Positions 1,836 to 53,720 of a stretch of DNA of 56,991 nt are shown here, piece by piece. Below the pieces are notes generated by a model. The model was not told where the DNA came from, ran no database searches, and worked only from the letters and a program-made list of their open reading frames with translations. The number at the start of each line of letters is the position of its first letter. Positions within the stretch are counted from its first letter, which is position 1. The position numbers and the translations under genes were made by a program. The DNA is from Octopus sinensis (Eukaryota): assembly GCF_006345805.1 (NCBI RefSeq), contig NW_021833618.1:1-56991 (forward strand). The letters run 5' to 3'.

Positions 1836-2639
1836 TCAAAAGCAATCCTTCCAGCATAGAAGATTGCTTGATGCGGGATATCGGCAGAGGTTGCAATCTA
1901 TTGTGAGTAAACTAACACACCATAGGCTTCCTCAGTGATTATTAGTGTTGCGTCTGTTGTTGCAAATGGATCCATTTCTACACTTTTATCAGTTAATTTG
2001 ATATCTAGCTGATTTGTCACTGTTGTAATCCTTATATTTGAATATATAAGTATACATTATGGGTTGGGACCCATTTGTGAATATGCACATTTTCTGGCCG
2101 TCAATAATACTACAAAGTCAGTAAGTTAAAATACCTCATGTAGAGGGGAAGACTGATTTTTGGCCTCAGGAAAATGGTATTTAATGGCATGTCACTTTAA
2201 TGTTAGAATAAGATTTGTACAGGCTTAATGATCCGACTAGACTTGCAAAGGCATCTACGTTCACGTAACGAAGGTCACTACAGGATTGCAGTTCTCTAAT
2301 GATTCAAAATATTTGAATGTACATATGGCGTAGGTGAATCAACCCGTCAAATGAGTTGTTTAGTATTCTCTTTAGCGAGTCTCCACGACAGTGACTAGTG
2401 TTAATAAAATGTTGATTACAATTGCTCCAAGTACGTTAAATTCGAGAATATTTCTCCATTTGGAAATAGAACGTTGCTAGAAATTGCAATTATTGTGTTA
2501 TGTTCTGCAGCATTTGCTCCATTGAATTCACAGTTTTGCAAAACTCTGATTCAAATAAGAAATTTTTCAAAAACTGTTGTGTTAAATCACAGTCTCTTTG
2601 GACCACTAAGTCAACCAAAAGTAGGACAAGTGAAAGCAT
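1836..2639 (-). CDS. Secreted LRR protein, family copy A1 (intact, 8 exons, 207 aa)
   Basis: Exons 2639-2575, 2545-2420, 2394-2323, 2295-2221, 2194-2135, 2109-2056, 2030-1921, 1897-1836; seven GT-AG introns of 23-29 nt; 624 nt open frame. Hydrophobic N-terminus MLSLVLLLVDLVV; LRR-like 72/75-nt phase-2 exons (FHCRGDSLKRILNNSFDGLIHLRH, IELQSCSDLRYVNVDAFASL); C-terminal CNLC...CWKDC. Confidence 0.85.
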
Positions 2640-3511
2640 TCTAATTAAGGCTAATATTTTATTGCGAATAACTCATTGGTTAGACAACAAATAAATTAAA
2701 AACTTTATTAACTAAATCCAAAACCGAAAATAATAAGAAATTAAGTAATTATTGATCCTAGTTTTTGGAAATTTTTCTCATCTTGAGGGGACTCCATAAC
2801 TCATTATTTCCACATTTACTTTCATGCTCAGAGTCATTTATAACTTGTCAATTTGTTTCATCTGGGGTTTTCGCATTATTAGTTTGTCATTGCAAACAAC
2901 TGCCGTAATGACTTCTTTATTAGGCATATTAATTCCCATTCCTATGCTCCAGAACGATGCTTTCTAGTGTCTTTTTCATTACAAATGCCAGAATGTATGT
3001 TCTTGTCGGGCCTTGAATAAATAATCTTTCGATATAGGAGATTGAACACTTTGTAATACTTTTAAACCTACTCCGTCCCTATTCACAAAAAGATAGAACA
3101 CTATTTTTTTCATTACTGTCGTTTAAATCATATATTTTTACTGGAATGCCACATTTATTAAAGCAGAGAGAGATTGTGTATTATTTACGTCCATCCATGC
3201 AGTGCTAATCCACGGATAGCATATAAGAAAAAATTTTAGGCAAGCGGTGTCGCAGTGGTTTCTGTTTCGGAAGCAGTCAAGATGATTAACAAAGGAATTG
3301 TAGAGAATTGAGCAAGAGGAGAAATGCCTGGTTTCAATTACCTACAAAACACGGATTGGATGCCACCTACGTCGCACCGACTGCTGAAATCGATTGACGA
3401 GATGTCTGATAATATAGAATGATTGAGAAGGAGAGGGAAGAAGTTTGCAGTACTGTGAGCAAGTGTTGGACTGCCCCACCAATCTCACTCACCCGAGATT
3501 AGGGTGTAATA
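1880..3511. repeat. Segmental duplication, paralogous to about 36720-39024
   Basis: Long near-identical runs in the same orientation (e.g. 2700-3511 versus 37550-39024 apart from a MITE in the latter); homology continues through 10873-11100 and 12279-12367 versus 39023-39338 once insertions are removed. Confidence 0.9.
2700..3100 (-). mobile_element. 5'-truncated R4/Dong-like retroelement 3' end
   Basis: Translates SYIERLFIQGPTRTYILAFVMKKTLESIVLEHRNGN, homologous to SYMERLKLDASTRSYIQSLTIKKTLEAMLVEHKHG of the element at 48470-51993. Confidence 0.7.
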
Positions 3512-3619
3512 CAGTCCGACCTTGAATTGGAACACTAAGTGTTCCAAAAACTGAGGTTTTGTCAAAAAATTAATATCAATATAAATTTAATTAAGACGTT
3601 TATTTACGAAACCAAAATT

Positions 3620-6600
3620 TAATTAAGATTAAAATATTTAATTAATTAGGACTTTCAATCCTGATTGATAGTCTCTCTTCTCCTTTTAGGAGAAGAGTCT
3701 GCTGCTTGTTCCTCTTCATTCTCTATCTCTGCGTCGGTTGTTGTGCGTCTTTTATCTTTGAATGAATTCCTGGCGGCATGCCATTTCTACTAGTTGATCG
3801 GTCGCAGAGGTATATTCCTCGCCAGTTATCTTCATTCCATGCTTGTGTTCAATTATCATGCTCTCTAGCGTCCTTTTGAGCACAATCGATTGGATGTATG
3901 TCATTGTAGATTTTTCAATATATAGTTATCCATATAATTTTTGAAGCATCTTGTGACAACACCATCCCAGGTCAGAACCACAGGAATAATTTTAACTTGG
4001 CATTCGTAGAGTAGTGACAGTTCATTTGCAAGGAAATCATATTTTGAAGTTTCTCAACTTCCACTTGTTTTAAGCGGTCCTGAGATGTTATGCCCACCTC
4101 GATTAAGGTTATTTCCTTTTTAATCTTGTCATAAACAAAGATATCCGGTTTATTGAAGTTGACTTTATTTTCTGTTATAATTGACGTGTCAACTTTAATT
4201 TCTACATTTTGAGTTGACAATATCGACTGAACTGAATGAGTCTTTAATTTCCTGTTCTTTTTGATTCCATACATTCGACAAATATGAAGATGGACACATT
4301 TAACCACCTCGTCATGTCTTCGGAGGTAATCGCTATTGAGCATTTTACCACACTGTGTGGCCAGATGATCAACAGTTTGTTTACTTTTTTTACAATGATT
4401 GCATAACGGCCTCGTGTTTGCAAAAAACAAATTTCTATCTTGCAGAAGGCAGTATAATGCTTCACTTCGGGGGCCATTATTTCCTTTGGCTAACCATTCT
4501 GAGGAAGTAGAAAGATCGACATTTGATTCATTCAAGCATTTGAACATAACAGAGTGTAGTACTTGGACTTTATTTTGTTTAGCAAATATTTTTTCTGAAT
4601 GTCTTGGAGAAAATTAATATCTATGCTTTCTGTGTCAGCAATAGCGTATTTAGAGGTAAGAAATCCTGCGATTGTAGTCAAATGCCATTTCTTTGTTTTA
4701 ATAACTCGCAGAATCCCCGACCTTCGCAAACACACAGCCGACTGTCTTTCCAAGCTTTTAAGAAATTGCATGAGTATTAATTCGCTCTTGAACGAGATGG
4801 AGGCAAGTCCTCTTCCAAAAGTTTTGCGGTCTAAATACAGCCTTTCTTTATTTGCAGGCTGGAAATGTAACTTGAGTGTCATGAGCAGTCGACGTATTTG
4901 TTTATCAATGTCATCAAATTCATATGGCTCGATATTAATTAGCCCAATATAATAATTATATAGGGACAATGCATATTCATTTATGGCATAGAATAAATTC
5001 ACCGAATTCAATTTTGTTTTTGACAACATAGTTATTTTTTTACATTCTCCATTATTGAATCCATAACTTTATTCTTGAGGACATTACTTCCTCCATCTTC
5101 AAATACTCCCAAATAGCGATATCCATTGATTCCTTCCAAAGTCTCACAGCATGATAAAGATTTGACATTAGAGGCCGATTTTTCAGAGTTCATCTCCAGG
5201 CCAACAATGTCGAAAAATTCTTTAACAGCTTCCACCATTTTAATAACAGTGTCTTCTTTGAGAGCAAATATCTTTAGATCGTCAATAAAAAATAGGTGAT
5301 TGGTAGAATATGTCAGCATATTTAGATCCTCCTGATTAATTTGCAATTTGGGAAATTTAGAGTTCAGGATCCTGCTTAGGGGATCCATTACCATAACAAA
5401 TAGCAATGGGGATAATGAATCTCCTTGTAAAATTCCTCGAGTTAGCTTTATTGAACCAATTTTTCTTCCATCAAGGTGTAGATTTACTTTCCACTTCTTG
5501 ACTATACTTTTCACAAAGTTAATAATCCAGAGTGGAATTCCAGAGCTGTCCATTATGTGAAATAAAAATTGGTGATCAACCGAGTCAAAGGCTTTCTTTA
5601 CATCCACCCAAGCAGAGTACAGACTGTTTTCATATTCCTTGTTCAAGCATTGATTAATAAATGCTTGCTCTTTCGCACCCTGACATTGCTTTCTGGTTTC
5701 GAGTTGATTGTCTGAAATCAGCCCAAATCCATCCACAAAGTCAAAGAGTTTAGCATTCACACACTTCGTTACAAGCTTGTACAAAGTTGGCATACACGTT
5801 ATAGGACGTAAATCCTTTGGATTCTCACAATCATCCTTTTTTGGAATCAAGTAAGTTAATCCCGTGTAAAACCAACTCTCGGGCATGTACTCACCCTTGA
5901 TTATCCGGATTACTTCATTACACAAGAATTCATGTAATGATTCCATTTTCTTGATGAAAAAGTTATATGTTCCATCGCATCCGCACGCCTTCCAATCAGG
6001 CACATATTTGAGCATATCTTTAACCAACTCATTTGTGAATTGAGGTTCTATAGCTTCACCACCGGTAGACCTCACATCCACACAATTATACGAAACGTGA
6101 TCCATATTTCTCTTTCTCCAGACGTCCTCCCAGAATAAAAAACACTCATTATCATCAAAGCCATATAAGGTTACTTCATTATTCGACGATAAGTTTCGGT
6201 AAAACCTTCTGCGGTTTAATTCGAAGCACGCATTGTCTTTTCGGAACTCTTTCCTCGAGTTATAAATGGATATTTGTTTATCTTTAATTCTGATTAGATC
6301 ATTGATTAAAGTCTCAATTCTCATTAGCCGTAGCGGCAGAGAATATCCATTACATTTTTCTTTTCAGATTGAGGTAATGCTTGCCTCGAAAAGGAATTCA
6401 CTAATTTAATTTCAGCTGCTAATTTCGAAATTTTGTTTTCTGTATTTTCCAACCATGTGCTTTTTGTTTTAGGCCTTATAGTTAAGGCCAAATAAGCACA
6501 CTGTGCAGCATATAATATGTCTGTAATCTGATCCATATTTTGTGGAAGATTATCTTCTGTAATACGATAAATTGCAGAATTCAATCCAGACAGAATATTA

Positions 6601-7160
6601 GTTTTCACTTTATTTTTTTGGATTTTTGGGGTAGGTTTTCGAGACTCTCTAGGAATAGATTTGATTCTTTCGAGTTGGACTTTGAGTTCTTCTAGGCAAT
6701 TCTTGAAGTTAGAAATTTCAATATTCATGTTAGATTTTCCTTCACTACAATCGCCTCTTTTCCCTACATTTTGATTCCCATTTAGTGGTTTGACCATTTT
6801 TTTAGTTGATATAGACTTGAGCACTTTAAGTATTTTTCATTGAACTCTTTCAGAATGAGATCCCAGCCACCTCTAGGCATCCTTCCAAATCTTTCTTTGA
6901 TAGCATAGAACACCTGTGACACCCATTCAGTCTCAGAGACACACTTGACATCCTTAATAATGGCGGACAGGGAATGAAAGTTAGTTGGTGCAGCACGACT
7001 TCCAACTGTAGGATTATTGTTAATATTAGTTCTTGTGCCGTTATCCAGCCCCAGAGACAACACTCCTGCATCCACTATACTGTTTTTATTATTTGATTCT
7101 GCAGAAAGGCCCATGGGATTCGTTTTCTTCTTATTGATAAAAACGGACATGCACAACACA
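3620..7160 (-). mobile_element. Near full-length R4/Dong-like RLE non-LTR retrotransposon, broken ORF
   Basis: ORF pieces 6782-7159, 6324-6824, 5032-6324, 4532-5029, 3972-4547 carry RT (QGDSLSP, FIDD), a CxxC..H..C knuckle, RHD and PDIFVYDK..LIEVG restriction-like endonuclease motifs. Confidence 0.9.
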
Positions 7161-7299: not shown

Positions 7300-9065
7300 G
7301 AAGGAAGTCTCTTGTCAAGGAAAGAAATCGTCTTAAAAAAGTAGGGATCCGAACCCCGATGCAAAAATCTGTTTGAAACTGTTGAACGACGAAATAAAAG
7401 CTAGTAAATTCAAAACTCAAAGAGCGAAATGGAGGAAAGTACTTACGTCCCTAAACCGTAATCGGTCGACATCCGAGATCTGGAAATCTATTCGGAACAT
7501 CTCGAAGGCTAATGAGGAAACACCTGGAGATGACGAATTCAGCCAAAAAGACCTAAATGCCTTAATAAAATACTACGCGAAAATCTCTTAAAGGATCGTA
7601 TGAAGACTGCCCCTTCCAAACCGCCGCTAAGGAAGCTGAAAAGTAAACATTCAACTCATTTCACTGAAAAAGAAGTATTGGAATCCCTACACCAAACAAA
7701 AGTAACATATTCACATGGTCCCGACGGCATTCCTATAATTCTCCTGAAAAACATAGGGAATGAGGGAATCAGTGTTCTCACAAAATCTACAATTGGTCGA
7801 TTAACTACAACTCAATCCCAACGATTTGGAAATTGGCGAACATCCGCCCAATTTTGAAGAGTGGAAAACCAAAACAAGACCCGGCCTCCTTCAGGCCAAT
7901 TTCCCTATTATGTTCCACGTCAAAAACTCTGGAAAAACTCATCCTCACAAGAATCATTAACAGCATGGATTCAAAAAAGATTGTTCCACTGCAAGCTTCC
8001 TTAGCTCCTTGACTAACTTTATCCGTTCTGGCATTTCGTGCAAGCCAAGACATCAGAAAACTGTACTTTGTTCGCTGGATATCCACAAAGCCTTCGACGC
8101 TGTGCCTAGAAAAAACCTAGCATGGAAAATCTACCAATCAAACATCCCTGAAGACCTCAAGCTCTGGTTGACTAACTTCCTCAGCGGTCGAAGAGGAAAA
8201 GTATGCTTTGGAAACATTCGTTCCATTTCCCGTCTATTCCCAAATGGTGTACCCCAGGGCTCACCATTATCACCTCTCCTATTCAAATTGTTTACGGCCG
8301 ATATTCCGACGCCTAATGGCGATCTGCTTCTGGCCTATGCAGATGACATTGTATTGGCATCACGGGACCAGAACATCCAAACAGCAAAAGGAAGATTACA
8401 ACAAAACCTGGATCACCTAGTTGAGTGGTTTAACGTAAACCGGATGTCGATCAACACAGAAAAATCTGTCACAACTCTCTACTCCTCAGCCAAAAGACTA
8501 TCGAAAACTTCAATCGAAGTTGTTGTGGAGGGAAGAGTATTACCTTTCAGCAAATGGCAAAAGATATTGGGATTAACTTATGACACGCACATGAACTTCT
8601 CTAAACATGTCACAAATGTGCTGAACAAATGTGAAAAGAAAATCAACCTCCTGAAATGCCTAACTGGTCTATGGAAAATGGGAAATCACCCTATACTTAA
8701 AACACTCTACTCACAGTATATCGAACCATGTATCTCATATGTTTGTGCCTCATGGGGGCCACTGATTTCGAATACAAACATCCGTAAAATCTCCGCAACC
8801 CAGAAAGAAGCTTTCACACTTACCGAAAGGTGGTATACAGGTGAAGCTATCAAACCACCAATCTCTTTCGAAACTCTCATTGAGAAGAATACAAAAGGGC
8901 ATCAATGGTATAAAGGAACGATCCGGCCTCAACGATCTTGTGTGGGCTCAAGAGAGCAGCACAGAGCGAAGCTGAGAGCAATGATCAAATTCGTCAGGAT
9001 CACCTAGTTAGTTTTTTTTGGTTAACGGTGGTCTTTGGAATAAATTTGGATTTGATTTTGATTTG
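7300..9065 (+). mobile_element. 5'-truncated I/Jockey-like LINE with RT and (TTTGA)n-type tail
   Basis: ORF 8009-9007 has DIHKAFD, GVPQGSPLSPLLF, YADD; upstream RT N-terminal pieces at 7373-8000; ends AATAAA followed by tttggatttgattttgatttga. Confidence 0.85.
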
Positions 9066-10687: not shown

Positions 10688-11100
10688 GCCTAGAATAAAT
10701 CAAATCAAAATTTATTCCAAAGACCACCGTTAACCAAAGTCATTTTAAATGAAAACCTCGATTTGGAACCTAGAATCTAGGCAGAGATCCTACAAAGTGT
10801 TCCAAAAACTGAGGTTGTTCCAAAAACTGAGGTATTCCAGCCCAAGGTCTGTTCCAAATCGAGGTCGGACTGTACTACAAAACAGTCGACGACCATCTCT
10901 GCTACAAGACGGAAATAGTCGACCCCACCAAGAAAATCTCCCATTTTACATGTGTAGAGGAGGTGATACAAATCTTAGAGGCCTATTCGTAAGCACATTA
11001 ATTGTCTCTGTTCTCTCTGCAGCCCGACAACCTCAACCGACTAGGGCCTTTCTTCAACTTGGCGGTTTTTCACTGTGAAGTGAAGGAGATGCCTCACAAG

Positions 11101-12270
11101 CAGTGTTCCCTCTAAGCGAGTGGTAGCTATGCGCGCTGGGCACATTGCATTGTGCAGCGTTATAAGTGACGTATGCAAAAAATTTTGGGGGGGGAAAATT
11201 TTACAATTAAAAAACAATGGTTAAAAAATAGGTCTAGTCAATTGGATATTCTTCTGTTTTTATTTTGTATCCAAAATTTGTATACTCGATCAAGATCCAC
11301 TGTATTCCCACTTGTTAAATAGAACTTAATTTGCATGATCATCTCCAAATGGTCAATCTCAAGTCTATTACGTAGTTTTAGTTTTGATACAGTTCATCAA
11401 ACTAAATCCACGTTCAGCATCAGCACTCGACGCTTGAAATGTGCCACAAATATCCACAAATGTTGCAGTGGCTGAAAATTTTTTCTCCGCTATAAATTAC
11501 ATCTTCAAATGTTTTCAAAGCACCAGAGTGCATTTTTTTCTTTTAAAATAAACTTGAGATCTGTATATTCCGACTGCAGTTTTATGAGTGGGACTTCTGA
11601 AGAGAGTAATTTTCATATTTTTTCGCTAATTTAATTATCTCTCCTCTTTTCCAAATTCAAAGTTGTCTGATTTTGAATTGCTTGAGTGTCAAATGCTACC
11701 ATTCTCTTAATTCGTCAGCTGGAAATCTTTCTTGTAAATGCAGATAAACATGCTCGATAAAGCATAGGATTTCATCTGTATTTGTATCTCCATAACCAGT
11801 TGTTGATAACACATCTTCACACTGTCACTCCAGTAAATTTCATTCCATCCAATATTGAGATTTCAGCTTCGAAATTTTTGCTCTGGCAAACTGTACAGCT
11901 TCTATGGTCGATATACGCTTCTTGGAAAACTGTGCACAAATCTGCTAATTCAGCCAAAATTTCATTTAAGACAGTTAAAGCAACATGAATAAGAGGATTT
12001 TGAAGTTGTTTTAAGCAATATTTTGCAATCGGATCATTATCATCTTCAACCTGCTTAAAAGAAGGAGAATTTTTCTTAAGTCTCATATCAATATTATAGA
12101 CACGTTTTCGTTTTGAAATGAAAATAAGAATATATAAATTCATATAAAAAATTAAAAAAAATAGCAATTTTTAATATTATACTTTCTACTGCGCAGAAAA
12201 AAATTTCGCTGCGCAGCAAGGTGCAAACTGCTGCGCGGCCGCGCACGCGTGCAGCTTAGAGGGAACACTG
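11101..12270 (-). mobile_element. Non-autonomous hAT (ZNF862-like) copy 1
   Basis: TIR CAGTGTTCCCTCTAAG at both ends; perfect 8-bp TSD CTCACAAG; empty site at 39239-39246; retains the hAT dimerisation-type motif TFQASSADAERGFSLMNCIKT. Confidence 0.93.
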
Positions 12271-13531: not shown

Positions 13532-13603
13532 TCCCGCGACCCGGATTCGAACCGGGGACCTAAGGATCTACAGTCCTCCGCTCTACCACTGAGCTATCAC
13601 GGG
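13532..13603 (-). tRNA. tRNA-Tyr(GTA), intronless, 72 nt
   Basis: CCCGTGA TA GCTC AGTGGTA GAGC G GAGGA CTGTAGA TCCTT AGGTC CCCGG TTCGAAT CCGGG TCGCGGG A; complete cloverleaf, C1:G72, downstream T-run. Confidence 0.93.
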
Positions 13604-31740: not shown

Positions 31741-31754
31741 AAATAATCTTTATA

Positions 31755-36649: not shown

Positions 36650-37486
36650 TGATCACGATCCTTTCTCAGGTCCACTCATTCCCCCCACTCCTTAGCACCA
36701 CCTACATTGGGGTGTGATGGTAGCAGAGGTTGCAATCTATTATGAGTAAACTAATCCACCATCTGCAGGTTTCGATATTAGTACTCACGGGTAATATATA
36801 TCTGGTCCTATATTCACACTTTTGTTAGTTAATAACAAGGTGGCGATCGAATAAGTACTGATCGGCGGTCTCGTAATCCTTATAGGTGAATATCCAAGTA
36901 TTCATTATGGGTAGCGCCCCATTCGTGAATATACACATTTTCTGGCCATCAATAATACTATACACTCAGTAATTTAAAATACAGAAAGTTGAGGGGACGA
37001 TTGTTCTTAAATTAAACGCGACTGGAAAATGGAATTTGATGGTATGTAACTTTAATGTTAGAATAAGATTTGTACAGAGATGATAATGCGACTAAACGTT
37101 CAAAGTCATCTACATTCACGTAACAAAGTTTAGTAAAGTGATCTAATGATTCAAAATATTTGAATGTACATAGTATTTAGGTGAATCAACCCGTCAAATG
37201 AGTTGTTTAGTATTCTCTTTAGCGAGTCTCCACCACAGAAACTAGTATTAATAAAATGTTGATTACAATTGCTTCAAGTTCGTTAAATTCGCGAATATTT
37301 CTCCATTTGGAAATACAACGTTGCTATAAATTCGAATTAATGTTCTATGTCCCGCAGCATTTGCTCCATTGAATTTACAGTTTTGCAAATCTCTGATTCA
37401 AATAAGCAATTTTTCAAAAACCGTTCTGTTAAGTCACAGTCACTTTGGACCACTAAGTCAACAAAAAGTAGGACAAGTAAAAGCAT
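36650..37486 (-). pseudogene. LRR-family copy A2 (pseudogene)
   Basis: Same exon/intron layout as A1; exons 1-3 open (MLLLVLLFVDLVVQSDCDLTERDLQNCKFN..FFCGGDSLKRILNNSFDGLIHLNT); 8-nt deletion in exon 4, stop in exon 5, GT>GA donor, foreign 42-bp patch in exon 8. Confidence 0.85.
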
Positions 37487-37813
37487 TCTAATTAAAGCTA
37501 ATATTTTATTGCGAATAACTCATTGGTTAGACAACAAATAAATTAAAAACTTTATTAACTAAATCCAAAACCGAAAATAATAAGAAATTAAGTAATTATT
37601 GATCCTAGTTTTTGGAAATTTTTCTCATCTTGAGGGGACTCCATAACTCATTATTTCCACATTTACTTTCATGCTCAGAGTCATTAATAATTTGTCAATT
37701 TGTTTCATCTGGGGTTTTCGTATTATTAGTTTGTCATTGCAAACAACTGCCGTGATGACTTCTTTATTAGGCATATTAATTCCCATTCCTATGCTCCAGA
37801 ACGATGCTTTCTA

Positions 37814-38486: not shown

Positions 38487-40621
38487 TAGTGTCTTTTTCA
38501 TTAAAAGTGCCAAAATGTATGTTCTCGTCGGGCCTTGAACAAATAATCTTTCGATATAGGAGATAGAACACTTTGTAATACTTTTAAACCTACTCCGTCT
38601 CTATTCACAAAAAGATAGAACACTATTTTTTTTCATGATTGTCGTTTAAATCATATATTTTTACTGGAATGCCACATTTATTAAAGCAGAGGGAGATTGT
38701 GTATTATTTACGTCCATCCAAGCAGTGCTAATCCACGGATGCATATAAGAAAAAATTTTAGGCAAGCGGTGTCGCAGTGGTTTCTGTTTCGGAAGCAGTC
38801 AAGATGATTAACAAAGGAATTGTAGAGAATTGAGCAAGAGGAGAAATGCCTGGTTTCAATTACCTACAAAACACTGATTGGATGCCACCTACGTCGCACC
38901 GACTGCTGAAATCGATTGACGAGATGTCTGATAAATGAAATGATTGAGAAGGAGAGGGAAGAAGTATGCAGTATTATGTTGGACTGCCCCACCAATCTCA
39001 CTCACCCGAGATTAGGGTGTAATACTACAAGACAGTCGACGACCATCTATGCTACAATACGGAAATAGTCGACCCACCTAGAAAGTCTCTTATTTTACAT
39101 GTGTAGGAGGTGATACAAATCTTAGAGGCCTATTCGTAAGCACATTAATTGTCTCTGTTCTCTCTGCAGCCCGACAACCTCAACCGACTAGGGCCTTTCT
39201 TCAACTGGCAGTTTTTCACTGCGAAGTGAAGGAGATGCCTCACAAGACAATAGAAATTGCGGAACAGCCCGTGGTGACTCCAGAGGAGTACTCCACAACA
39301 AACACTCCATTTTCATTGCCAAACTCATCCTGGACAACCTCTGAAGCATTTTGAGTTTCGACTGGATACTTCCATAAAATCCGTAAATAAATCATTTATA
39401 AATTGAACAAAAATTGGCTAACTCAATATTATTCATAAGATATCTGTAAATAAGAAAATTTGTGAGGTTATTCAATAATAATTCGGTGGAAAGCACATTG
39501 CACGAATACATCTTCCAGCCTATAACTTTCTTCAATAATTACTCATGCGTGTTTCCAACATTGTTATGTTTCCATCTTCAATAATTACTCATTTGTGTTT
39601 CCGATCAAACTTAACTATTTATTGTAGTATCTACCAGAACCTCCAACAAATCATTAGATACTGCATTTTTCACTAATCATCAGTCGTTCATTGACAGAAA
39701 ATATATCAATATTGTCAATGGAGCTCAGAAAAGGAGCTCATATTTGTCGTAAACTAGAATTGACGTCGTATGCAATAAAGCGTGATCTAGACTGGCTATT
39801 TCCGTTTGGCGAGGGTTTCCTTACCGCGCAGTCTATCATCACTGAGTCATAGTCTGGCTATTTCAGAGTCCACGACTGAAAGTGTCAGTTGGAGGACTAC
39901 AAAGAGGCACTGAGTCGCCTTCCTTTCTTTTTAGTGTGCAATAAAGTCGATTATCTGTCGCTGTCTCTGCCAAATTGGCATTGCTGACTAAATTAAGCTC
40001 TAAACTCTTTGCTTAATGTAGTGAAATACGTTTACACCAGTAAAAAATGGCTTGCGAAAAGCCACAAATAAAGGTCACTAACCTACCTTACATAGTGAGA
40101 TAGTGGTCACCTAACCAAAGAAAACTGCGATCTGTTGCGCTTAACCAAGGGAATTAATTGACCCTACTTCTGTTGTACTCCATTGGGGGAACATATTGTC
40201 CACACACTCCCTCAAACACATCCATTCGTCATATTACTCAACATGACAACCCCAGGGGACCAAGTCTACTGAGTGTCGGCAAAGTCAAAGAGATGACCTG
40301 TAAAATAAACCATGGTCATTTAGTATGTTCCACAGAGTTTAATGTTCTCGGATGAATTTGTTGTATATGCCTGTCGACAATTGGGAATTATCAGGTGTTG
40401 ACGTAGTAGTAAGAGGGTCACCAAGAGTTCCTTGAATAGAAAAAGCAACTATACACAGCTTCGCAAAACATTTGACAGCATTCGCATTTTCTAAGCGTTA
40501 ATGTGAAGGGACGTGTGAACAGGACTGTCATGAACAAACTAAGTGACTGACAGGCACCCTTGATGTATCTAAAAGGAGTAGGTTGTTGAATGAGATTAGT
40601 AAAGAGAGAGTAAGTGGAGTA

Positions 40622-41100
40622 TTAGAAGAGGGGAGTGAAGGACGTGTTTTTGTACTTAAATCGGTTCCTCATATCCCTGAGTGGAGCATGGGCGTAGTAC
40701 TCGTCGATGGAAGGTCAATCCAGTGGTCGCCCTCGTTGTGGTATAGACTGGCTAATATTGTTCCACCCCTCGACGTCCTTCATGATATCGGCCCCCATGT
40801 TCTTCTTTAGTTGCCTGACATAGCTGGGATATTAATAAACGTGGCACTTATCTTTGAGTAGTGGCTCGATGGCCACCACACTGTCGTAGTTCAACAACTT
40901 GCGGTCTCTACGTGTGAAGAGGACTCGTACCTTTTCCCCACTCGGTAGTGCATGTAGACGTACCAACTCACTGTCGTGAATGTAGGCCGACAATATCAGT
41001 CATATATTGTACTACTCGCCCTGCTCGTCCCATTTATGTCCTGCACACATCACCACCTATATTAACAACTATACAGATGGGCCAACGAAGGAATAAGGAG
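40622..41100 (-). CDS. NDUFA13: NADH dehydrogenase subunit NDUFA13/GRIM-19-like; frameshifted, 5' end not resolved
   Basis: After 23/24-nt introns: VAIEPLL..YVRQLKKNMGADIMKDVEGW..QS(V)YHN..HWID(P)SIDEYYAHAP; resembles IALLPLL..IMKDVPDWKVGESVFH..W.PP; 1-2-nt deletions needed to keep frame. Confidence 0.55.
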
Positions 41101-41196
41101 AGGAGAAATGTGGGTAATGTAAACTACCGACATGCCTACTCGAATAGTCCCTACGTTGGTGGCCACAGAATAACAAGCAAACAAAAGAAAGAACAA

Positions 41197-43943
41197 TCAT
41201 ACACAGTCATACGCCTTATTTGCCTTTTTTAACTGCTTCTTAACCCAATTGACAGTCTTCTTGCCGTTGGGGGTGCATGTGAGCCGGTCGTTGGTCAACA
41301 GTTGGTTGACGGAATCGATGGCGAAGAGGGAACGAGTTTGTGTGGAAAACATGCCCAACATGTCCCTAGGAGTGAGAAGGTGTGGACACCCCAATAGTCC
41401 GCACAAATTTTCGAGGGTGGAAATGTCGTAAATGGAAGAGTTGGCAGCGACGGAAGTGAGAAAGTCGAACAAGGGGAGATGTGGATTGAGAAGGGAAGAG
41501 TGTGATGCTGGTGGTTAAAGAACAAGGCACCCGCGAGTCCCTGGACAATGCCGGTGTATGCCTGAATGCATGCTTCGTGTGTCTGTGAGAGGAGAGCGAG
41601 GCCTTTTGTGTGGACTGGAATGAGGGAAGGGAGGACTTGGTCGAACGAGGCGGAGGCAGCGGATTGGAGTGTGTCGAGGACGAGGGTGGCGAATGGGGCA
41701 AAGTGGTGGCCGAGTAACAAGGCCAAGTCCCCGAAGCCGGCCAAAATGACAGCCTTGAGTTTGTCGGAGGTGTGTGAACTCTGTGGAATAGTGAGGAGAG
41801 TTACGAGGAGGATATTCCAGAGAGAGGACATGAGGGGGTGTAAGTAAAGGAGGATGTGTTCAGGGGAGTGGATGTCGGCGAGGAGTGCCAGACAGGCGAA
41901 CAAGACCTGTGATGGGGAGAGTGGAGAACCTGTTGGTCGTTGTGGGTGTGAGGAGATTAAGCAAGAGGGGGAGGATGGTGTGAGTGTTAGTATCGTCGAG
42001 AAAGGGAGAGAGGGCGTAAAGGGCGTCCTCGTGGACATGGTGGTGGGCGGGGGAGGAGAGGAAGGTGGAGAGGATGTGGAAGGCAGTGTCTGCGTGTGTG
42101 AGTTGTGAGAGGGGGAGGAGGAGGACAATGGACTGTGGTGATGGGGAGGAGTACTCTGATGAGTGCACAGAGGAGTGACTGTACGTGGAATTGATTGTCG
42201 AATTGGAGTGTATGTTGTAGAAATTGGACGATGAGAGGGAAGTAATGTGAGAGGACAGGAGACATGTCGGGGAGTATGTTGTGTGTGATCAGACAGATCA
42301 GAGTCTCGAAGTACACCGAGTCGTAGTGTGTAGTGCAGAGGCGAAAGAGTGCGTCGAACAGATGGTGAAAGTGTGGGGAGAGTGAGTGAGGGGCAGTGGA
42401 AGCAAGAGTGGAGAGTGCCTACAAGTGAATAAGAATGGTAACGTAGCAGGCATTGGTGGCCACTCGTGGTTCGTGTGTGAGACACGTGCGGAGTGTGTGG
42501 GCAATGTGTGGAAGGGGAGGTGGGGGACGTGCTCGCACAACTCCCGAGTACCCAGACGACTGTGTCGCGGACTGCCACACTGGGGTCGGTAGTGGCGAGT
42601 GTGAGGAGGAGGGGGAGGACGCGGAGGGCGTGTGGGGCAATGTTGTGGCGGACGACACAGCCTGGAGTGACACACAAACACGACCGAATGCCATCACGGC
42701 GCCTCCCGCATATTCCAATGGGCATGTCCGATGAACTGTTCTGCAAAGTGGAGGACGTGGGGGAGGATGTGGTCGTGGCAGCATTCGCTGAGGAGTGTGA
42801 GACAGACGGAGGCTGCTTTGGGGGGATCCAGCAGCCGTCGGTGTCGTCATCCTCGTGTTGTTTGGGGAGGTGTGTGAGTATTGGGTATATAATGTGGGGC
42901 ATGGCTGCCTGTGCGTACAACTTGGACGAGTGGGGGGAGGACAACTCCACCTCACAAATGCTCGACCAGAACTCGATTCCCTGGAGGACGTGTGACTCAC
43001 TTTGGATGGCATTGAGCGTGATCTGTACATGTCATGTCCTCACTACCGGGAAGATCAAGTCGGCCATGTAGTCCTCCAAGTACTCGTAAAAGTGTGCGGT
43101 CATGACATCCAGGCACTTGAGGGACATGTCGGCCACGTCCACGTCCGACGAGTGGCACGACTGGCAGACCACCTTCATTATCACGTCCCGTTCATTCTAT
43201 CGTAGACCAGAGGAGGGGGACCTTGGCCTGCAGGAGGGGGACTGTCGAGTGGAGAGCCCTCAGTGCGGCCAATTGGATATATCCACTAAATAGGACAAAC
43301 ACCACTCACACACTCGCCTCCATTCCACGCACAATCGCACTCACCAACAAGTCCTGTGTGTTGGCCATGTACGAACAGTCCTGCACTATTACCACACACA
43401 CACCAGGTCATTCGCTATGAACCCCAGAGCCTCCAAACTGGCCTCCGTCACACGCCCCTCCATCACGTTGTTGCACAATAACACCACTCCCTCCCCCACT
43501 CTCCAAACGCCATCTCCACACACGCCACCGCAGAATACACCATCGCCACACTGCTCGGTCTCCACCTCTCCTTTTCCAGTCCACACACAATCTGCCTCAT
43601 TACTCACTCCTCACATTCCATTTATCCTCTCACGCGCCCACTCTTCCTGCTCTCTCCATCGTTGCGCCAGCCACACACGCTTCTCACTGTTCACACTCCC
43701 AAATATTATATTCTTCAATTGGATGCACGCCTGTCTACATACTACCTCCTTGCTCTCCCCCTTTATTACTTCCGACAGCTCCAACATCACTTCCGTCTAC
43801 ACTTTACTCACACCACCCACTAAATTCCTTTCACACGCCTCCTCCAGCACTTCCAGGCACTTCTTCACTTCACACGGGTCTACAACTTTACACAACACTC
43901 TACTTCCCAACACTGATTGCTCCAACAACATTGACAGATCCAT
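41197..43943 (-). CDS. KPNB1: Importin subunit beta-1; many micro-introns and apparent frameshifts
   Basis: MDLSMLLEQSV, ASLEALGFIANDL, EDDDTDGCWIP, AVMAFG, VRDTVVWVLG, KAVILAGFGDLAL..VLDTLQSA, EACIQAYTGIVQGL, KKTVNWVKKQLKK match importin-beta blocks in the correct order. Confidence 0.85.
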
Positions 43944-43999
43944 CACCACACTACACTCTATTTTATTCCCTCTTTTAATTCATCTAATTTAGCTAATTA

Positions 44000-44760
44000 A
44001 TAATTACTCTTCAATTTTTGTTTTCCGAGTTCCCCATGACTCCACTCTGATCGTCCTCGCCATTATCCTCAATCTCCTCCTGCAGTCTCTGGGTCTCTTA
44101 AGGGACTTGCTGATCTTCATTATATTTCCGCCAGTCCCTATTTACGGAATTTGCAGAGTCCAGGATTTCAGTCCCTATGTTTGTACTCGACAAACATGCT
44201 CTCCAGAGTGGCCTTCCAGAATAACAATCTGCTCAACGGATCCAAAGTCAAAATAAACAACTGAGGAGACAGGGAATCTACTTGGAGTATTCCACGTTCT
44301 ATGTTAACAATTCCCAGATGCTGCTTTCCTAATTTGAGGGAGACCTTCCAATTTGGAACTATTGACATTATAAACTTTGTTACCCATTCAGGAAGCCCGG
44401 AGTTTTTCAGAATCACTGCAAGGAATTCGTGATTGATTGATTCAAAGGCTTTTTTAACATTTACCCATGAAGAAAATAATTTATACTCATGTGACCTGTT
44501 CACACAACAGTTAATAAGTGCTTGCTCCTTTGCACCTTAACAATGCCTCTTAGTGCCAAGTTGACACTCAGAGATTAGACTGGATTCTTTTATAGGAAAT
44601 TATTACATCTGAGTAATCTACTAATTCTTCTATTAGTTTTATCATCAGATCCGCCGAATATGTTGTTTGTGTCTGACATGCGCTGTGCATTGAGCTGACT
44701 CTTAGGCTCTCGACTATTCTTTCAGCCACTTACTCTAGCTCACATCTAGTTTTCTTCTGT
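44000..44760 (-). mobile_element. Internally deleted R4/Dong-like element (mid-RT fused to 3' end)
   Basis: VKKAFESINH..GILQVDSLSPQLF..LDPLSRL joined directly to KATLESMFVEYKH. Confidence 0.75.
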
Positions 44761-48400: not shown

Positions 48401-48469
48401 TATGCATAGTCACTGTAATATAGTCCGAATAATAATTGTCCGAATAATAATGATAAAATAGTTTGAAGT

Positions 48470-51400
48470 GTGACGTGTATGTCTGTTTTCACCAGTCCGC
48501 AAACAAATCCTGAGGGCCTTCCTACACAAAATACAAATAATAATAATCAATCAGAAGTTGGAAACGTGTCTTCAGGGATACATGGAACGCCTGAAACTTG
48601 CAATGATCCTTATATTGAACCTTCACGAACGCATTTGCTCCCCCTTAAATCATTGATAACTGAAACACATTCTAACGACAAATTGCAGTGGATATCTTCT
48701 GTTGTTGATTCGGCTAAACGGAGATTTGGAAGAATCCCTCGTGGTGGATGGAACCTCATTGTACATAATTTCAATACCCGTTTTCTTGTTCAGAAAAGCA
48801 TCTCCGATGTTAAAAAATTATTGAAAGTGAAACCCCATAGTGAGACTTGTGGTAATCAAAATGATGTGGGTGTAACAGAAAACGGAAATTCACTGTCAAA
48901 AACAGAAATTTCTTTATATGGAAAATGTAAAGAAGAATTTAATTTCCAAATTAAGAGAGTTGTATCAATATCAAGGGATTCGAGAAAGCCTACCAAAAAG
49001 ATTCCATATAAATTGGTTAAGAAAGATATTCTGGTTGCTTTGGATGCAGTGATTTCAAATTATGTATTGACTTGTCCTCCAAAGGATATAAACGAAATCA
49101 CGGATATTATTTTTGCAGGACAATGTGCATACGAAAATTTGGTTCTTAAAAATAAAATAAGAACCTCTTGGAGGGAAAATATTGAGAAGAGAATTACTAA
49201 ATTCAAAGAGAACCTCACTCTTATTGCTAATTTCTCCAGTCTGAAATCCAAAAGTGAAAAGGATACGGCCCTGGACTTTATGTGCTCCTTTGGATATAAG
49301 AAGTCGAGAAAGGGAGAAACCACCAGAATATGTACGTTAATTGAAGATAGAATAAAAATCATGGAAAAAAGGATTTCGATTTATGAGTCACGAAAATCAT
49401 TTAGAAGAGACAATTTTTGTTTTGAACTCAACAGAAGGAGGTTTTACCGAAACCTGAATGGTGGAGAAGATAATAAATATACGTTGCCAGAAGGTGAATG
49501 TTTGTCATTTTGGGAGAAGATATGGAAAAAAGATGAAAATCATATTGTTACTGATGTTGTTGGAAAACGTATAACTGGCATAGAACAATCCCCAGTTGAC
49601 ATCAAACCAGACTTTATCAAAAGTATTATTAACTATGCGCCAAACTGGAAGACTTCTGGATGCGATGGAGTATACTGCTTTTTATTAAGAAGTTTGAATC
49701 TCTCCATAATTATTTATGTGATGAAATTTTGAAGATTATTAATGGAGATTACTGTCCTGGTCAGTGGTTTTACACTGGGGTTACATTTCTCATCCCAAAA
49801 AAAGCTTGTTGTGAATCACCTAATGACTTGCGTCCGATTACATGCATGCCTATACTATACAAACTTGTTACAAAATGTGTCAACACTAAACTTACAGACT
49901 ACATTGAAGCTTTTGGTCTTGTTTCGGATAACCAACTGGGAGCTAGAAGACATTGCCAGGGTGCAAAAGAACAGGCTTTAATAAACCAGTGCATTAACAA
50001 TCACTGTGGAAATAACTTATTTGCGACATGGATTGATATAAACAAAGCATTTGATTCTGTTAACTATGAATTTTTATCGCTGGTATTGGATTATTCTGGA
50101 CTCCCTGAGTGGATTGTGAAGTTTATTAAAAGTTTGATAAGTAAATGGAAAGTGATTCTGAATCTCAATGTAAATAGAATTGGAACAGTGAAATTAGAAA
50201 GAGGAATTCTTCAAGGAGATTCACTATCTCCCCAACTTTTTACGCTGGTAATGGATCCGTTGAGCAGGATACTAAATCACAAGTTTCCTAAAATCTGTAT
50301 TGACCATAATGACCCGTCTCAAATAACATACTCAACTAATCATCTGCTATTTATTGATGATTTGAAAATACTTGCTGAGAAAGAAAATACGATCTTGAGG
50401 ATGATGGAAAGTATTGATGAATACTTCAGTGTTGTTGGTCTCAGGAGGAATTCTGAAAAATCTGCAACCAATCTGAATTATGTTAAAGAAACTAGAAGTT
50501 TTGACGGATATGATGGATATCGATATCTGGGAGTCCTGGAGGATAAAGGAAGCAATGTATTGAAGCATGAAGTTATGAAAAAAATTGCAGAAAATGTAAA
50601 GAAGAGAATTGAAAGCTTTGTGAGCACGAAGATAAATGCAGTGAATCTATTCAAGGCGATTAATGAATATTCTCTATCACTTTACAATTACTATATTGGA
50701 CTAATTGACATTGAGCCACACGAGTTTCAAGCCATTGATACCGAAGTTCGAAGGATTCTATCTAATTTACATGTTCATCTGAAACCTGCAAATAAGGAAA
50801 GATTATATATAAGCAGATCTAACCTTGGAAGAGGACTTAATTCAATTGTCCATAAAAGTGAATGCATGTTATACCAATTTTTGACTGATCTTGAAAGAAA
50901 GTCTGCAATGTGTCTCAGAAAGGCTGGAATCTTGCGGGTCTTGAAAATAAATAAAACACATATGGCCACCATCGCAAGATTTCTTACCTTCAAATACAAT
51001 ATTGAAGATCCTTCAGAATTGAATATAAACATAATCAAGGAGAATCAACAAAAGAGTCTAATGAAGATTATTAAATCGAAGATGGTGCATTCCGTACTTT
51101 TCAAATGTTGTGAGGATCAGAATGTTGACATCAATATGTCTACGGAATGGCTAGTGAATGGAAACAACAGTCCGAGATCAGAAGCAATGTATTGTATTAT
51201 TCAGGATCGAAATATATTTTTCAACGATAACGGAGGAATGTGCAATCATTGTAATCAAGCTAAAAAATCTGTTGATCACATGGCTACAAGATGTAGCAGA
51301 ATGCTGAACAGTGATTATACCAGAAGACATAATGAAGTTATAAGATGCATCCATTTGCATCTCTGCCGCCAATATGGAATCAGGAAAACCAAAAGGTTAA

Positions 51401-52070
51401 AGTCACACACAGTCCAGTCAGTTAGCTCAAATCATAAAGTGGAGATAAGAGTGGACATCACCTTGCAGACAGATGTTCATGTAAAAAACAATATACCAGA
51501 TATCTTTGTCCTTGATAAAAAGAAAAACGAAATCACTCTAATTGAAGTCGGAATTACTTCCCACGCCATGTTAAAGCAAGTGGAAGTAGAAAAACTGCAT
51601 AAATATGATCTTCTTGCTGGAGAATTATCTCAAATCCACGGTGCGAAGGGAACGATAATCCCCATTGTCCTCACATGGGACGGGATAGTTTCTAAATTCT
51701 ATAAGTCTTATATGGAAAGACTGAAGTTGGATGCTTCCACTAGATCGTATATACAATCGCTGACGATTAAGAAGACATTGGAGGCCATGCTTGTTGAACA
51801 TAAACATGGAGTGGAAATTGAAAAACATGAGGAACAAGTTTCAAGGGCCACCAACCACCTCCTAAAATTGGCTAGAGAAACAACAGATCCATCAGATTTG
51901 CCGGAAGATGTGTCTCATGTGTCATATGAAGTGTTAGAAGAGGAGAATACGCAGATCCAGTGCAACGGTCCAAAAAGGAGGAGAATTATATAGATTAGTT
52001 AGTTATTAGTAACTAAAGACGTTAATTTATAATTAAATTAAATATTATATTAAAAAAACAGTTTAATAAA
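48470..52070 (+). mobile_element. Near-intact R4/Dong-like RLE retrotransposon (about 1170-aa single ORF with one -1 indel)
   Basis: ORFs 48470-49732 and 49660-51993 join if one T is added to the TTTTT at 49679-49683; RT (QGDSLSP, FIDD), CNHC..H..C, RHN and PDIFVLDK..LIEVG motifs. Confidence 0.93.
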
Positions 52071-52130
52071 TATATCAATTCAATGTCTAACCACTGAGTT
52101 ATTGACAATAAAATATCAGCATTAATTAAA

Positions 52131-52936
52131 ATGCTTCCACTTGTCCTATTTTTTATTCATTTAGTGATCCAAAACGACTGCGATTTGACAAGAAGGTTAT
52201 TGAAGAATTGCTTATTTTAAAAGATATCTTAATTTATACAACTGTATTTTCAATGGAGAAAATGCTGCGGGAGATGGGATAGATATTACCATAAAGAGAA
52301 AAGTTACATTTCCTAATGGAGAAATATTCTCCCATCTAAAAAATTTGAAACAATTGTAATCAATATTTCATTGATATTAGTGAGTGTAAAGGAGACTCGC
52401 TGAAGAAAATACTAAACAACTCATTTGATGGGTTGGATAAATTAGACTATATGTATATTTAAATATTTCGAATTATTAGAATGCTGTATTACTGTGATAA
52501 CCTTCGTTACGTGAATGTAAATAGTTTTGCACGTCTAGCCGCATTATCACATCTGTACAAATCTTATTCTAACATTAAAGTTTTATGCCGTCAAATACCA
52601 TCTTTCAGTCGCCAAAAATCAGTCGTCGTGCCACGCTTTAGTATTTTAAATTACTGACTGTGTAGTTTGTATCACGACCAGAAAGTGTGCATGTTCACAA
52701 ACGGGTCCCAACCCACACTGTATACTTTGTTATTCTCATATAAGAATTACGAAAGTGATGGATGAAGCATATATGATGTTAGCCGACAACAGTGTGGAAC
52801 TAAAATTATATAAAAATCAAAAGATAACCCTCACTATGCAAGAAGCATTTGGTGTATTTGTATACTCACAATAGATTGTAACTTCTGTGACCACCCGATC
52901 CCCAATAATATGATCTGCACAAGTGAATGTAACTGA
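52131..52936 (+). CDS. Secreted LRR protein, family copy A3 (intact, 8 exons, 208 aa)
   Basis: Exons 52131-52195, 52224-52355, 52381-52452, 52480-52554, 52581-52640, 52666-52719, 52745-52851, 52875-52936; introns 28, 25, 27, 26, 25, 25, 23 nt, all GT-AG; 627 nt open. MLPLVLFFIHLVIQNDCDL..FECKGDSLKKILNNSFDGLDKLDYIMLYYCDNLRYVNVNSFARL..CNFC..CTSECN*. Confidence 0.87.
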
Positions 52937-53310
52937 AAAAATATTCTAACGATATTCATTAACTAACCTAATTATTTATTCTGATATTTCTTGTTTCCGC
53001 TTTTCTTTATTGTTACGTGCACTAGTCAGAATTAAAGGCAAACTTGCAACGTGGATTGCAAGTTGCTATTAACTTCATTTAAGTGGTATTGCTTAAACAC
53101 ATTTTTGAAAAGGGTCACCTGTGACTCATCCGAGCACCGGTATCCTGCCAAAAGAGTACGGACACGAGGATAGATGAGTGTTGCCGTTGACTTGACCATT
53201 AGCCTTTCGACTATTCTCTTAGCTACTTTCCTGGCTACCATCTAATTTTGTTTTTAAACTTTCATTATACGAGTAATAACAATCAGGAAAAGCTTAATAT
53301 CTATAAATAA

Positions 53311-53720
53311 GTGAGCCAACATGACTGTGACTTAACACAAATGTTTCAAGAATCACTTAAGGCTTTAGATACGGTGATTTCATTGGAGAATGTTGCGAGA
53401 CATTCAAAATTAATCTTAATTCAACATGACGTTGCATTTCCCTTTGGAAAGACATTCTCCAAATTACAAACATTCTTTTTTATTTCTGTTCTTTTAATCA
53501 TTACAAAATTGAAACATTTGTAATCAACATTTTATCTAATACCCGTTACTGTATCTGAAACTCAGTACAGAAAATACCAGAAAACTCATTTAATGTCGTG
53601 AATGTAAATGCCTTTGCACGTCTTATCAGTTTAAAGCTCTGCACAAATATTATTCTAAAATTACAGTTAGAGCCCGACCCACAATATATACTTAGACATT
53701 TTAATATAACGATTACGAAA
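53311..53720 (+). pseudogene. LRR-family copy A4 (decayed, tandem to A3)
   Basis: QHDCDLTQ, VAFPFGKTFS, intron-2-like gtaatcaacattttat, VNVNAFARL and intron-4-like gcacaaatattattctaaaattacag, with large deletions. Confidence 0.75.

Follow-up and report, generated by a model that had tools for sequence, protein, structure and literature searches.

The leucine-rich repeat (LRR) superfamily comprises several well-described recognition systems. Extracellular LRRs of the 'typical' class, 24-25 amino acids (aa) long, are found in the ectodomains of LGRs and glycoprotein-hormone receptors and in LRRTM, LRRC4 and LINGO, and one LRR per phase-2 exon is also the layout of the hormone-receptor genes. 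The agnathan VLRs are small capped modules of ~170-250 aa whose diversity lies on the concave beta-sheet. Plant receptor-like proteins (RLPs) and receptor-like kinases (RLKs) of the Cf-9/Xa21 type form tandem clusters subject to birth-and-death evolution, in which a ratio of nonsynonymous to synonymous rates (omega, or dN/dS) above 1 is confined to the x of the xxLxLxx motif. In venom gene families, introns and flanks are conserved and the mature-peptide exons are hypervariable. The present work concerns a multigene family which resembles these systems in different respects. It is represented by five related loci, named A1 to A5, in an unplaced 57-kb scaffold (contig C10089; NW_021833618.1) of the Octopus sinensis genome assembly; the whole stretch analysed, 56,991 nucleotides (nt) long, is referred to as the window. 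We consider it highly probable that this family is real, protein-coding, of the LRR type and under site-specific positive selection. As regards the reading as a whole, we lean, more cautiously, towards a lineage-specific germline family of small secreted LRR glycoproteins, encoded by a parasite co-assembled with the octopus and acting as diversifying binders.

A preliminary description of the window had proposed a multigene family invisible to tracks of open reading frames (ORFs), with two intact genes, two decayed copies and one fragment. Alignment and gene modelling confirmed all five loci, to the base. A1 (1836-2639, minus strand) is an intact member of the A1-like subfamily, with eight exons (2639-2575, 2545-2420, 2394-2323, 2295-2221, 2194-2135, 2109-2056, 2030-1921 and 1897-1836, minus strand) encoding 207 aa, and A3 (52131-52936, plus strand) is an intact member of the A3-like subfamily, with eight exons (52131-52195, 52224-52355, 52381-52452, 52480-52554, 52581-52640, 52666-52719, 52745-52851 and 52875-52936, plus strand) encoding 208 aa. 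The exon sizes in A1/A3 are 65, 126/132, 72, 75, 60, 54, 110/107 and 62 nt, and the seven GT..AG introns, of 29/28, 25, 27, 26, 25, 25 and 23 nt, lie in phases 2, 2, 2, 2, 2, 2 and 1. Removal of these seven segments leaves open frames of 207 (A1) and 208 (A3) codons, both closed by TGA, and the gene models bear out the identical eight-exon layout, intron positions and phases announced for this pair. Spliced alignment gave a score of 1019 for A1, with 7 introns, 0 frameshifts and 0 stops, and of 1055 for A3. The alignment between the two genes spans their full length and both flanks, intron 4 being identical in both, and their proteins are 51% identical, in line with the rough half estimated earlier. 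The A1 locus was also found on contigs C8338, C8899 and C10868, with 0 mismatches and gap differences only; as for A3, its copy on C10202 had identical scores and its copy on C12459 differed by one residue.

The three other loci are damaged. A2 (36650-37486, minus strand), a decayed copy of the A1-like type, is still full-length but has suffered a frameshift and deletions, and two of its splice sites are gone. It was also matched by tblastn, and its spliced alignment, which covered residues 1-192, showed 1 frameshift and aberrant 'introns'. Decayed and truncated, with an internal deletion, A4 (53311-53720, plus strand) stands in tandem with A3, starting 375 nt downstream of it, with neither an exon-1 start nor a promoter. 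It is supported by DNA alignment, by a tblastn match (E about 1e-5) and by a spliced alignment score of only 67. A5 (28440-28617, plus strand) is a 3'-terminal fragment which contains the last ~22 nt of the coding sequence, i.e. the end of exon 8 (..CTSECN stop), followed by the conserved 3' flank. It was not recovered by protein search and required DNA-level comparison, which gave 92% identity over 158 nt to another locus of the family, L050 (blastn). One gene unit measures ~0.95 kb, and intron lengths across the family range from 23 to 30 nt, with a mean of 25.7 nt. Such genes escape standard annotation because their exons are 54-132 nt long and their introns 23-30 nt, and the family was indeed invisible to ORF tracks, as had been proposed.

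The regions which surround the genes were remarkably constant. Across 27 aligned upstream regions, the 47 nt before the ATG were near-invariant between subfamilies whose proteins are only ~50% identical. This block is located at 2640-2686 (minus strand) in A1, at 37487-37533 (minus strand) in A2 and at 52084-52130 (plus strand) in A3. The pattern TGTCTAACCANTGAGTTATTNNCAATAAAAT (28 specified bases) that it carries is exact at 2656-2686 in A1, still exact at 37503-37533 in the decayed A2, and found at 52084-52114 in A3. The block includes a CCAAT at -40 and a AATAAAATAT box at -24..-15, and is presumed to act as core promoter and/or 5' untranslated region (UTR). The AATAAAATAT box sits only 15-24 nt ahead of the ATG. 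In addition to a short upstream ATG, the block may contain a GT..AG mini-intron, which would run from -33 to -12 or -2. On the other side of the genes, the 3' flank of A1 (1740-1835, minus strand) is conserved, contains ..ACTAACCTAATTATT.. and is presumed to be a 3'UTR, and that of A3 (52937-53100, plus strand) is likewise conserved and contains ATTAAA, then a hairpin, AACTTGCAA-CGTGGA-TTGCAAGTT. This 9-bp hairpin lies ~130 nt past the stop, at 53040-53075 (plus strand) for A3 and at 28560-28600 (plus strand) for A5, whose flank is the same as that of A3. Between subfamilies, similarity ends ~70-95 nt downstream of the stop and ~50-100 nt upstream of the gene.

The predicted protein was of the LRR type, as first suggested. 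Pfam searches of family members returned LRR matches alone, with LRR_8 in 23 of the 23 members examined (best E 1.2e-8), and a profile of the family compared with PDB sequences matched an LRRTM-based protein at E = 2e-15 over profile positions 37-126. Further matches of this profile in the PDB were to LGR4/5 (~1e-10 to 1e-12), VLRs (~1e-9), LHCGR (6e-7), LRRC4 and repebodies. The repeats are 24-25 aa long, have the form LxxLxLxxN/CxLxxIxxxAFxxL and fit best the 24-aa 'typical' class. Their Asn/Cys ladder (N46, D/N69, C93, N118, N145) is spaced by 23, 24, 25 and 27 residues, and four clear repeats (23-25 aa) are followed by a fifth (KMCIFTNG) and perhaps an irregular sixth, i.e. ~5-6 in total. 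The gene structure follows these repeats. Introns 2, 3 and 4, all in phase 2, each fall just before the fourth position of LxxLxLxxN, and the 72- and 75-nt exons encode exactly one repeat each (LRR2 and LRR3), which confirms the proposal of one LRR per phase-2 exon. Such a protein would be expected to adopt the LRR solenoid fold, with a concave parallel beta-sheet.

The secreted appearance noted earlier, with cysteines at both ends and no transmembrane (TM) segment, was also recovered. The N-terminus is hydrophobic (mean hydropathy ~2.4). In the hydropathy profiles of 27 proteins, no 19-aa window reached 1.6 beyond residue 20, and the mean hydropathy of the last 15 residues was negative in all 27, without any hydrophobic tail of the glycosylphosphatidylinositol (GPI) type. 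Sequons are conserved at N57, N76 and N145. Most members have nine cysteines, and these flank the repeats, with C17 and C27 on the N-terminal side and a C189-x2-C-x9-C-x3-C motif (C189, C192, C202, C206) on the C-terminal side, the protein ending 19 residues after the first C-terminal Cys. This pattern differs from that of the four-Cys LRRNT and LRRCT modules; by position, the C-terminal four-Cys cluster nevertheless resembles a short LRRCT. The protein is thus probably secreted, and these features point to a soluble glycosylated LRR binding module. By the same hydropathy analysis, the absence of a TM segment or GPI-like tail argues against the variant surface antigen which had been evoked as one possible identity.

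The family extends well beyond the window. A protein search of the assembly yielded 223 exon-level matches at more than 60 loci, and ~58 of these were modelled with a custom protein-to-DNA aligner in which stops, frameshifts and GT..AG introns are all permitted. At 29 loci the frame was open and complete, with seven introns; 27 of these loci are distinct, and one of the 29 is shortened by an insertion. A further ~14 loci were full-length with frameshifts or stops, and ~17 were partial. Nearly all full-length copies have introns of 28-30, 25, 27, 26, 25, 25 and 23 nt in the same phases, and exon count, hence LRR exon count, is constant across the loci modelled. The upstream pattern occurred 66 times with at most two mismatches (46 exact) in the 2.72 Gb of the assembly, and a reversed-pattern control had 0 occurrences. 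Chance is excluded as the origin of the gene layout, since the same layout is present in ~58 loci and the promoter pattern occurs 66 times versus 0 for the control. The genome-wide count which the preliminary description had called for therefore gave ~58 modelled loci and 66 promoter blocks, not just a few copies. Several contigs, however, repeat one locus with 0 mismatches and gap differences only, so that the real copy number is below 66, and the family comprises roughly 50 to 65 genes.

Promoter blocks are clustered, with at least 12 on contig C9004, 5 on C12459 and 4 on C8899. There are at least five subfamilies, and A1-like and A3-like genes co-occur on the same contigs. Within the A1 subfamily, shared segments are 2-2.4 kb long; between subfamilies, only the gene and its short flanks are shared. 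Shared units of this extent are what tandem or segmental duplication would leave; the idea of transposon cargo was rejected because the between-subfamily unit consists of the gene and ~50-100 nt on each side, without transposon termini. Clustered paralogues which are intact, diversified or decaying fit the birth-and-death evolution proposed from the five loci. Two possible mosaic genes were seen in the family. Two-kilobase units 100% identical to each other were found on single contigs, namely L052/L053 (C10384, 27.6 kb apart) and L063/L064 (C9004, 9.5 kb apart), the identical-copy comparison involving also L004 versus L002/L003/L005; either the duplications are very recent or the long reads were assembled redundantly. 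Two members are broken by insertions, L009 (C8338:24399-25555) and L068 (C9480:80525-83019), one insertion being in the last exon and the other, of ~1.9 kb, after exon 2; a portion of the L009 insert matches window 11097-11212 at 96% identity.

Evolutionary rates were clearly modulated by position in the predicted fold. All-pair statistics were obtained on the 27 distinct genes, the pairs not being independent. A concave set of 25 codons (x2, x3, x5, x7 and x8 of LRR1-5) was fixed from the motif before rates were examined. Mean differences over all pairs were 0.228 for the proportion of nonsynonymous differences (pN), 0.302 for the synonymous one (pS, NG86), 0.178 for 4-fold sites in conserved codons and 0.124 for intron cores, and at the concave sites pN reached 0.37-0.46. 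The coding sequence was less conserved than the introns and the 47-nt upstream block. Tiny introns are not constrained in this way in general: actin paralogues that possess them share the intron positions, but their intron sequences are unrelated. In the concave set, NG86 dN/dS was 1.35 (all pairs) and 2.6 (close pairs), with a maximum-likelihood (ML, GY94) omega of 3.57. Values were 0.58, 0.96 and 0.92, respectively, for the rest of the LRR region, and 0.93, 1.89 and 1.21 for residues 150-186. For the C-terminal cap, NG86 dN/dS was 0.27 (all pairs) and 0.29 (close pairs), and both caps together had an ML omega of 0.58. The whole gene gave 0.70 and 1.24, and the whole mature protein an ML omega of 1.10.

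Rates thus differ ~six-fold between site classes, and 48 alignment columns are invariant. Among random 25-codon sets, 52 of 5000 reached the observed omega and 2 of 5000 the observed pN, and a likelihood-ratio test of the concave set against omega = 1 gave 2dlnL = 35.6. Variability is highest at residues which alternate along the strands (38/40/42/44, 63/65/67 and 86/89/92), as would be expected of exposed strand positions. The sign of selection sought in the preliminary description is therefore present, with an omega of 3.57 on the concave set versus 0.58 in the caps and permutation support. In terms of the predicted structure, the putative binding face is under diversifying (positive) selection, the scaffold, caps, introns and flanks being kept.

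The genome to which this family belongs deserves attention. The O. sinensis assembly (GCA_006345805.1) comprises 13,516 scaffolds and 2719.2 Mb; 30 chromosome scaffolds account for 86% of its bases, and 5.2% of its BUSCOs are duplicated (PMC10700109). Its size here was 2,719,151,902 bases. Two scaffolds of chromosome size, C5 and C28, carry molluscan haemocyanin genes with seven functional units each. The window belongs to the unplaced scaffolds, and only small unplaced contigs carried family members among the matches listed. A long interspersed nuclear element (LINE) of the window had 43 scored copies, many of them 95-99% identical, all on unplaced contigs and 0 on chromosome scaffolds. Actin genes on chromosome scaffolds contain one long exon; on the unplaced contigs C8911, C12602 and C8460, actins have 3-5 introns of 24-34 nt, and C11053, which also carries a family member, contains an intronless 376-aa actin. 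In the window itself, an intact CFAP20 gene (~21820-22466, minus strand), in a stretch of 45% G+C content (GC), has two or three introns of 22-26 nt; the query was based on human CFAP20, and the first 'intron' is possibly misplaced. The window is not octopus DNA, an octopus origin being rejected on LINE distribution and intron sizes.

Animal introns shorter than 30 nt have been reported only from myxobolid myxozoans and Dicyema japonicum (PMC13644364). In Dicyema acuticephalum, from a Japanese 'O. vulgaris' host, introns measure 26.2 +/- 1.9 nt and actin2, of 376 aa, is encoded without introns (PMC2222250), and D. japonicum has a GC of 36.7% and 49% repeats with many LINEs (PMC6736024). GC in the window ranges from 30 to 54% and is mostly 33-43%. 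We judge it very likely that the window comes from a dicyemid, a renal parasite co-assembled with its octopus host, since ~26-nt introns, GC, LINE-richness, the intronless actin and an East Asian common octopus as host all fit; uniform ~26-nt introns, a GC of ~37%, abundant LINEs and an octopus host are what a dicyemid genome would present. A parasite had indeed been suspected from the outset, and the tiny introns and LINE distribution support this suspicion. The special transposon-rich compartment proposed at the same time, by contrast, is probably the normal state of this genome, considering the 49% repeats of D. japonicum (PMC6736024) and the housekeeping CFAP20 within the window. A myxozoan origin was thought less likely, given the mollusc host and a GC of ~37% versus 29% in H. 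salminicola, a fish parasite (PMC13644364). A ciliate origin, in which TAA and TAG would encode Gln, was rejected, as intact genes of the family end with TAA as well as TGA and contain no in-frame stops, which indicates the standard genetic code; it was further disfavoured by LINEs, a Helitron-type helicase and a pogo element, which point to an animal.

From a mechanistic point of view, the family would be encoded not in the octopus genome but in that of an animal whose introns are ultra-short, most likely a dicyemid parasite of the kidney. The predicted protein, of ~190 aa when mature, would combine a signal-peptide-like N-terminus, a two-Cys N-terminal cap, LRRs and the four-Cys C-terminal cluster. 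The family would grow via tandem and segmental duplication and lose copies via decay, and the presumably exposed beta-strand residues of the predicted concave face change more quickly than silent sites. The function that appears most likely is the binding of variable ligands where parasite and host meet. Candidate ligands may be found in the octopus renal epithelium, among urine components, or among host immune factors or microbes, and the repertoire would track ligand diversity; possible uses would include adhesion, capture or masking of host molecules, and interference with host recognition. Host-interface binders are the simplest reading for a parasite attached to the octopus renal epithelium and bathed in urine, and we would give this function close to an even chance.

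Several points weigh against the reading set out above. With LRR_8, A1 (15.9 bits) and A3 (26.8 bits) fall short of the gathering cut-off of 27, and neither LRRNT (PF01462) nor LRRCT (PF01463) was matched at E <= 10 in A1 and A3 or at E <= 1 in the 23 members. The function proposed is drawn solely from analogy, and the dicyemid assignment is circumstantial. A search of the assembly for a second cox1 as a parasite marker found only the octopus mitogenome and nuclear mitochondrial copies, and was uninformative. Processed (intron-less) copies were absent from the 40 scored DNA matches. Long-read assembly may have generated, as artefacts, some of the 'pseudogenes' with a single frameshift and some of the duplicate contigs, which makes copy number and decayed fraction uncertain. 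A whole-gene omega near 1 would, by itself, also fit relaxed constraint, and both pairwise and tree-based omega ignore gene conversion, in a family with two possible mosaics. In searches which covered 5.8 billion clustered proteins or 1.84 billion representatives, no public homologue was found at E <= 1 with A1 as query or at E <= 1e-3 with the 23-member alignment. A profile of exon 2 had four weak matches among the 1.84 billion representatives, to unrelated repetitive proteins (bacterial Ig-like or other domains), and a search of the dicyemid literature found no LRR family of this type. This agrees with the earlier remark that the family was not recognised as a named one.

Other roles may be considered for the same secreted proteins. 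They may serve the parasite's own recognition of microbes inside the renal sac, or discrimination of kin or species among dicyemids that share an octopus. Mosquito LRIM/APL1 and amphioxus LRR-only genes offer a comparison as pattern recognition systems, a hypervariable concave face and a germline multigene repertoire are typical of innate recognition families, and the lack of an anchor is consistent with a humoral factor. Nothing separates such own-recognition from binding at the host interface; the D. japonicum genome paper, however, reports a strongly reduced gene set with few LRR genes (just 34 with LRR_4), and we regard this role as possible but unlikely. A role in reproductive or developmental recognition, for instance in signalling between sperm and egg or between embryo and axial cell within the hermaphroditic gonad, would accommodate the whole-gene omega near or above 1 in recent duplicates, which is typical of reproductive proteins, gamete-recognition proteins being known for their rapid evolution, and dicyemid tissues are mostly reproductive stages (PMC2222250). 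Such proteins rarely form dozens of clustered paralogues under one invariant promoter, however, which makes this role improbable. It is slightly less probable still, and offered as speculation, that the ~50-65 genes constitute a germline repertoire of which one or a few are expressed per cell or individual, for antigenic variation or individual recognition that would be based on LRR modules and would have arisen independently of VLRs. In an animal of ~30 cells, it might serve to keep pace with host ligands or to distinguish between co-infecting dicyemid lineages; this idea comes from the one invariant promoter which all share and from differences located mainly on one binding face.

Two further explanations concern the nature of the copies themselves. 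If the family were a dead gene that drifted neutrally after being multiplied through segmental duplication or carriage by transposons, it could have a whole-gene omega of ~1.1 and about half of its loci broken or partial, as was observed, in a window full of LINEs with a Helitron-type helicase, a pogo element and a hairpin in the 3' flank. Yet 27 distinct copies keep a frame of ~207 codons and all 14 splice dinucleotides despite an 18% difference at 4-fold sites (NG86 pS 0.30). Site rates are moreover uneven, with 48 invariant columns, a cap omega of 0.58 and a concave omega of 3.57, and the unit shared between subfamilies is devoid of transposon termini, so that a non-functional repeat is very improbable. 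The idea of a VLR-like system or of antigenic variation, in which A4 and A5 would be somatic donor cassettes or one gene would be expressed at a time, draws on the many partial copies beside intact ones, the invariant promoter and the two possible mosaics. Of the VLR likeness evoked in the preliminary description, one part stands, the hypervariability of the concave face. The mechanism does not: each intact gene forms a complete unit under its own promoter, the frameshifts and the remains of promoter or 3'UTR in the fragments are those expected of decayed copies, the loci modelled included no incomplete 'acceptor' gene, there is no membrane anchor, and the number of LRR exons never varies. We find this last explanation barely credible. 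A germline family of secreted binders, more tentatively placed at the host interface, remains the reading that we prefer.

The window also carries a load of transposons, at 3972-6836 (minus strand) and, on the plus strand, at 7961-9007, 18621-19379, 20696-21262, 27590-28165, 32122-33437 and 48467-51993. These include several LINE reverse-transcriptase ORFs, a fragment of a PIF1-type (Helitron-like) helicase and a Tc5/pogo transposase. Copies of the LINE at 49.7-51.9 kb exist elsewhere with 95-99% identity, and this element was therefore recently active. CFAP20 is an ordinary conserved cilia/flagella gene located between transposons. Two tRNA genes were identified, a 72-nt tRNA-Tyr(GTA) without intron at 13532-13603 (minus strand) and a tRNA-Leu(TAA) at 29888-29969 (plus strand); an intronless tRNA-Tyr is unusual for eukaryotic nuclear genes. 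A GC-rich island (47-54%) occupies 40000-44000 and contains a 578-codon ORF (41295-43031, minus strand) with importin-beta/HEAT matches, partly out of frame and rich in Pro, Ser and Thr; this may be a genuine gene interrupted by tiny introns or else a copy in decay.

Dicyemids, whose bodies number ~30 cells, are an enigmatic group of parasites, and we know of no dicyemid host-interface molecule. If the proposed reading is true, this family would offer the first concrete candidate for the way in which a dicyemid attaches to, senses or evades its cephalopod host. It also constitutes a clean example of genes hidden from standard annotation. Furthermore, the O. sinensis reference appears to hold many unplaced scaffolds of a second animal with introns of 22-34 nt, such as C10089, C9004, C12459, C8899, C8911 and C12602, which matters to users of the gene set of this assembly or of its BUSCO duplication figure (5.2%).

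The family can finally be situated among known systems. With its detectable tandem repeats, within the 20-30 aa of the superfamily and with the LxxLxLxxN/CxL core, it would belong to the LRR superfamily, a well-known kind of system; it is the organism that is unusual. It shares with LGRs, glycoprotein-hormone receptors, LRRTM, LRRC4 and LINGO the 'typical' extracellular repeats, and single LRRs in 72- and 75-nt phase-2 exons. It differs from them by the absence of seven-transmembrane (7TM), Ig and FN3 domains, its ~5-6 repeats, a mature protein of ~190 aa, undetected LRRNT and LRRCT, and its large, multigene and fast-evolving character; the LRR ectodomain joined to a 7TM domain which defines LGRs was not found. 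Like VLRs, its members are small capped LRR modules with a hypervariable concave face. VLRs, however, arise by somatic copying of cassettes into one incomplete germline gene, whereas dozens of complete germline genes, at least 27 of them distinct and each with its own promoter, are present here, without stalk or GPI signal, with non-canonical caps and in an unrelated lineage. With plant RLPs and RLKs, the likeness lies in tandem clusters, birth-and-death evolution and omega above 1 at the x of xxLxLxx, but the plant proteins, anchored by a TM segment and built of 20-30 repeats, serve in host defence, whereas these are tiny, soluble and encoded by a parasite.

Expanded LRR families encoded by parasites and thought to act at the host interface are known as well, in the form of Leishmania PSA-2/GP46 and of the BspA-like TpLRR proteins of Trichomonas and Entamoeba. 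These are GPI- or TM-anchored or much larger, belong to protists and use other LRR subtypes. LRR_5, the BspA-type repeat, indeed gave weak matches in 20 of 23 members, with A1 (17.3 bits) and A3 (23.3 bits) below the cut-off of 27.7 bits. The membrane anchoring which characterises variant surface antigens (VSG, var, VSP) is absent here. Conotoxins and snake PLA2 provide a parallel for introns, promoter and 3' flank conserved above the coding sequence, their fold and biology being unrelated. In function, and by analogy, the family would work like other LRR recognition families, among them VLRs, the plant Cf/Xa21 clusters and the mosquito LRIMs.

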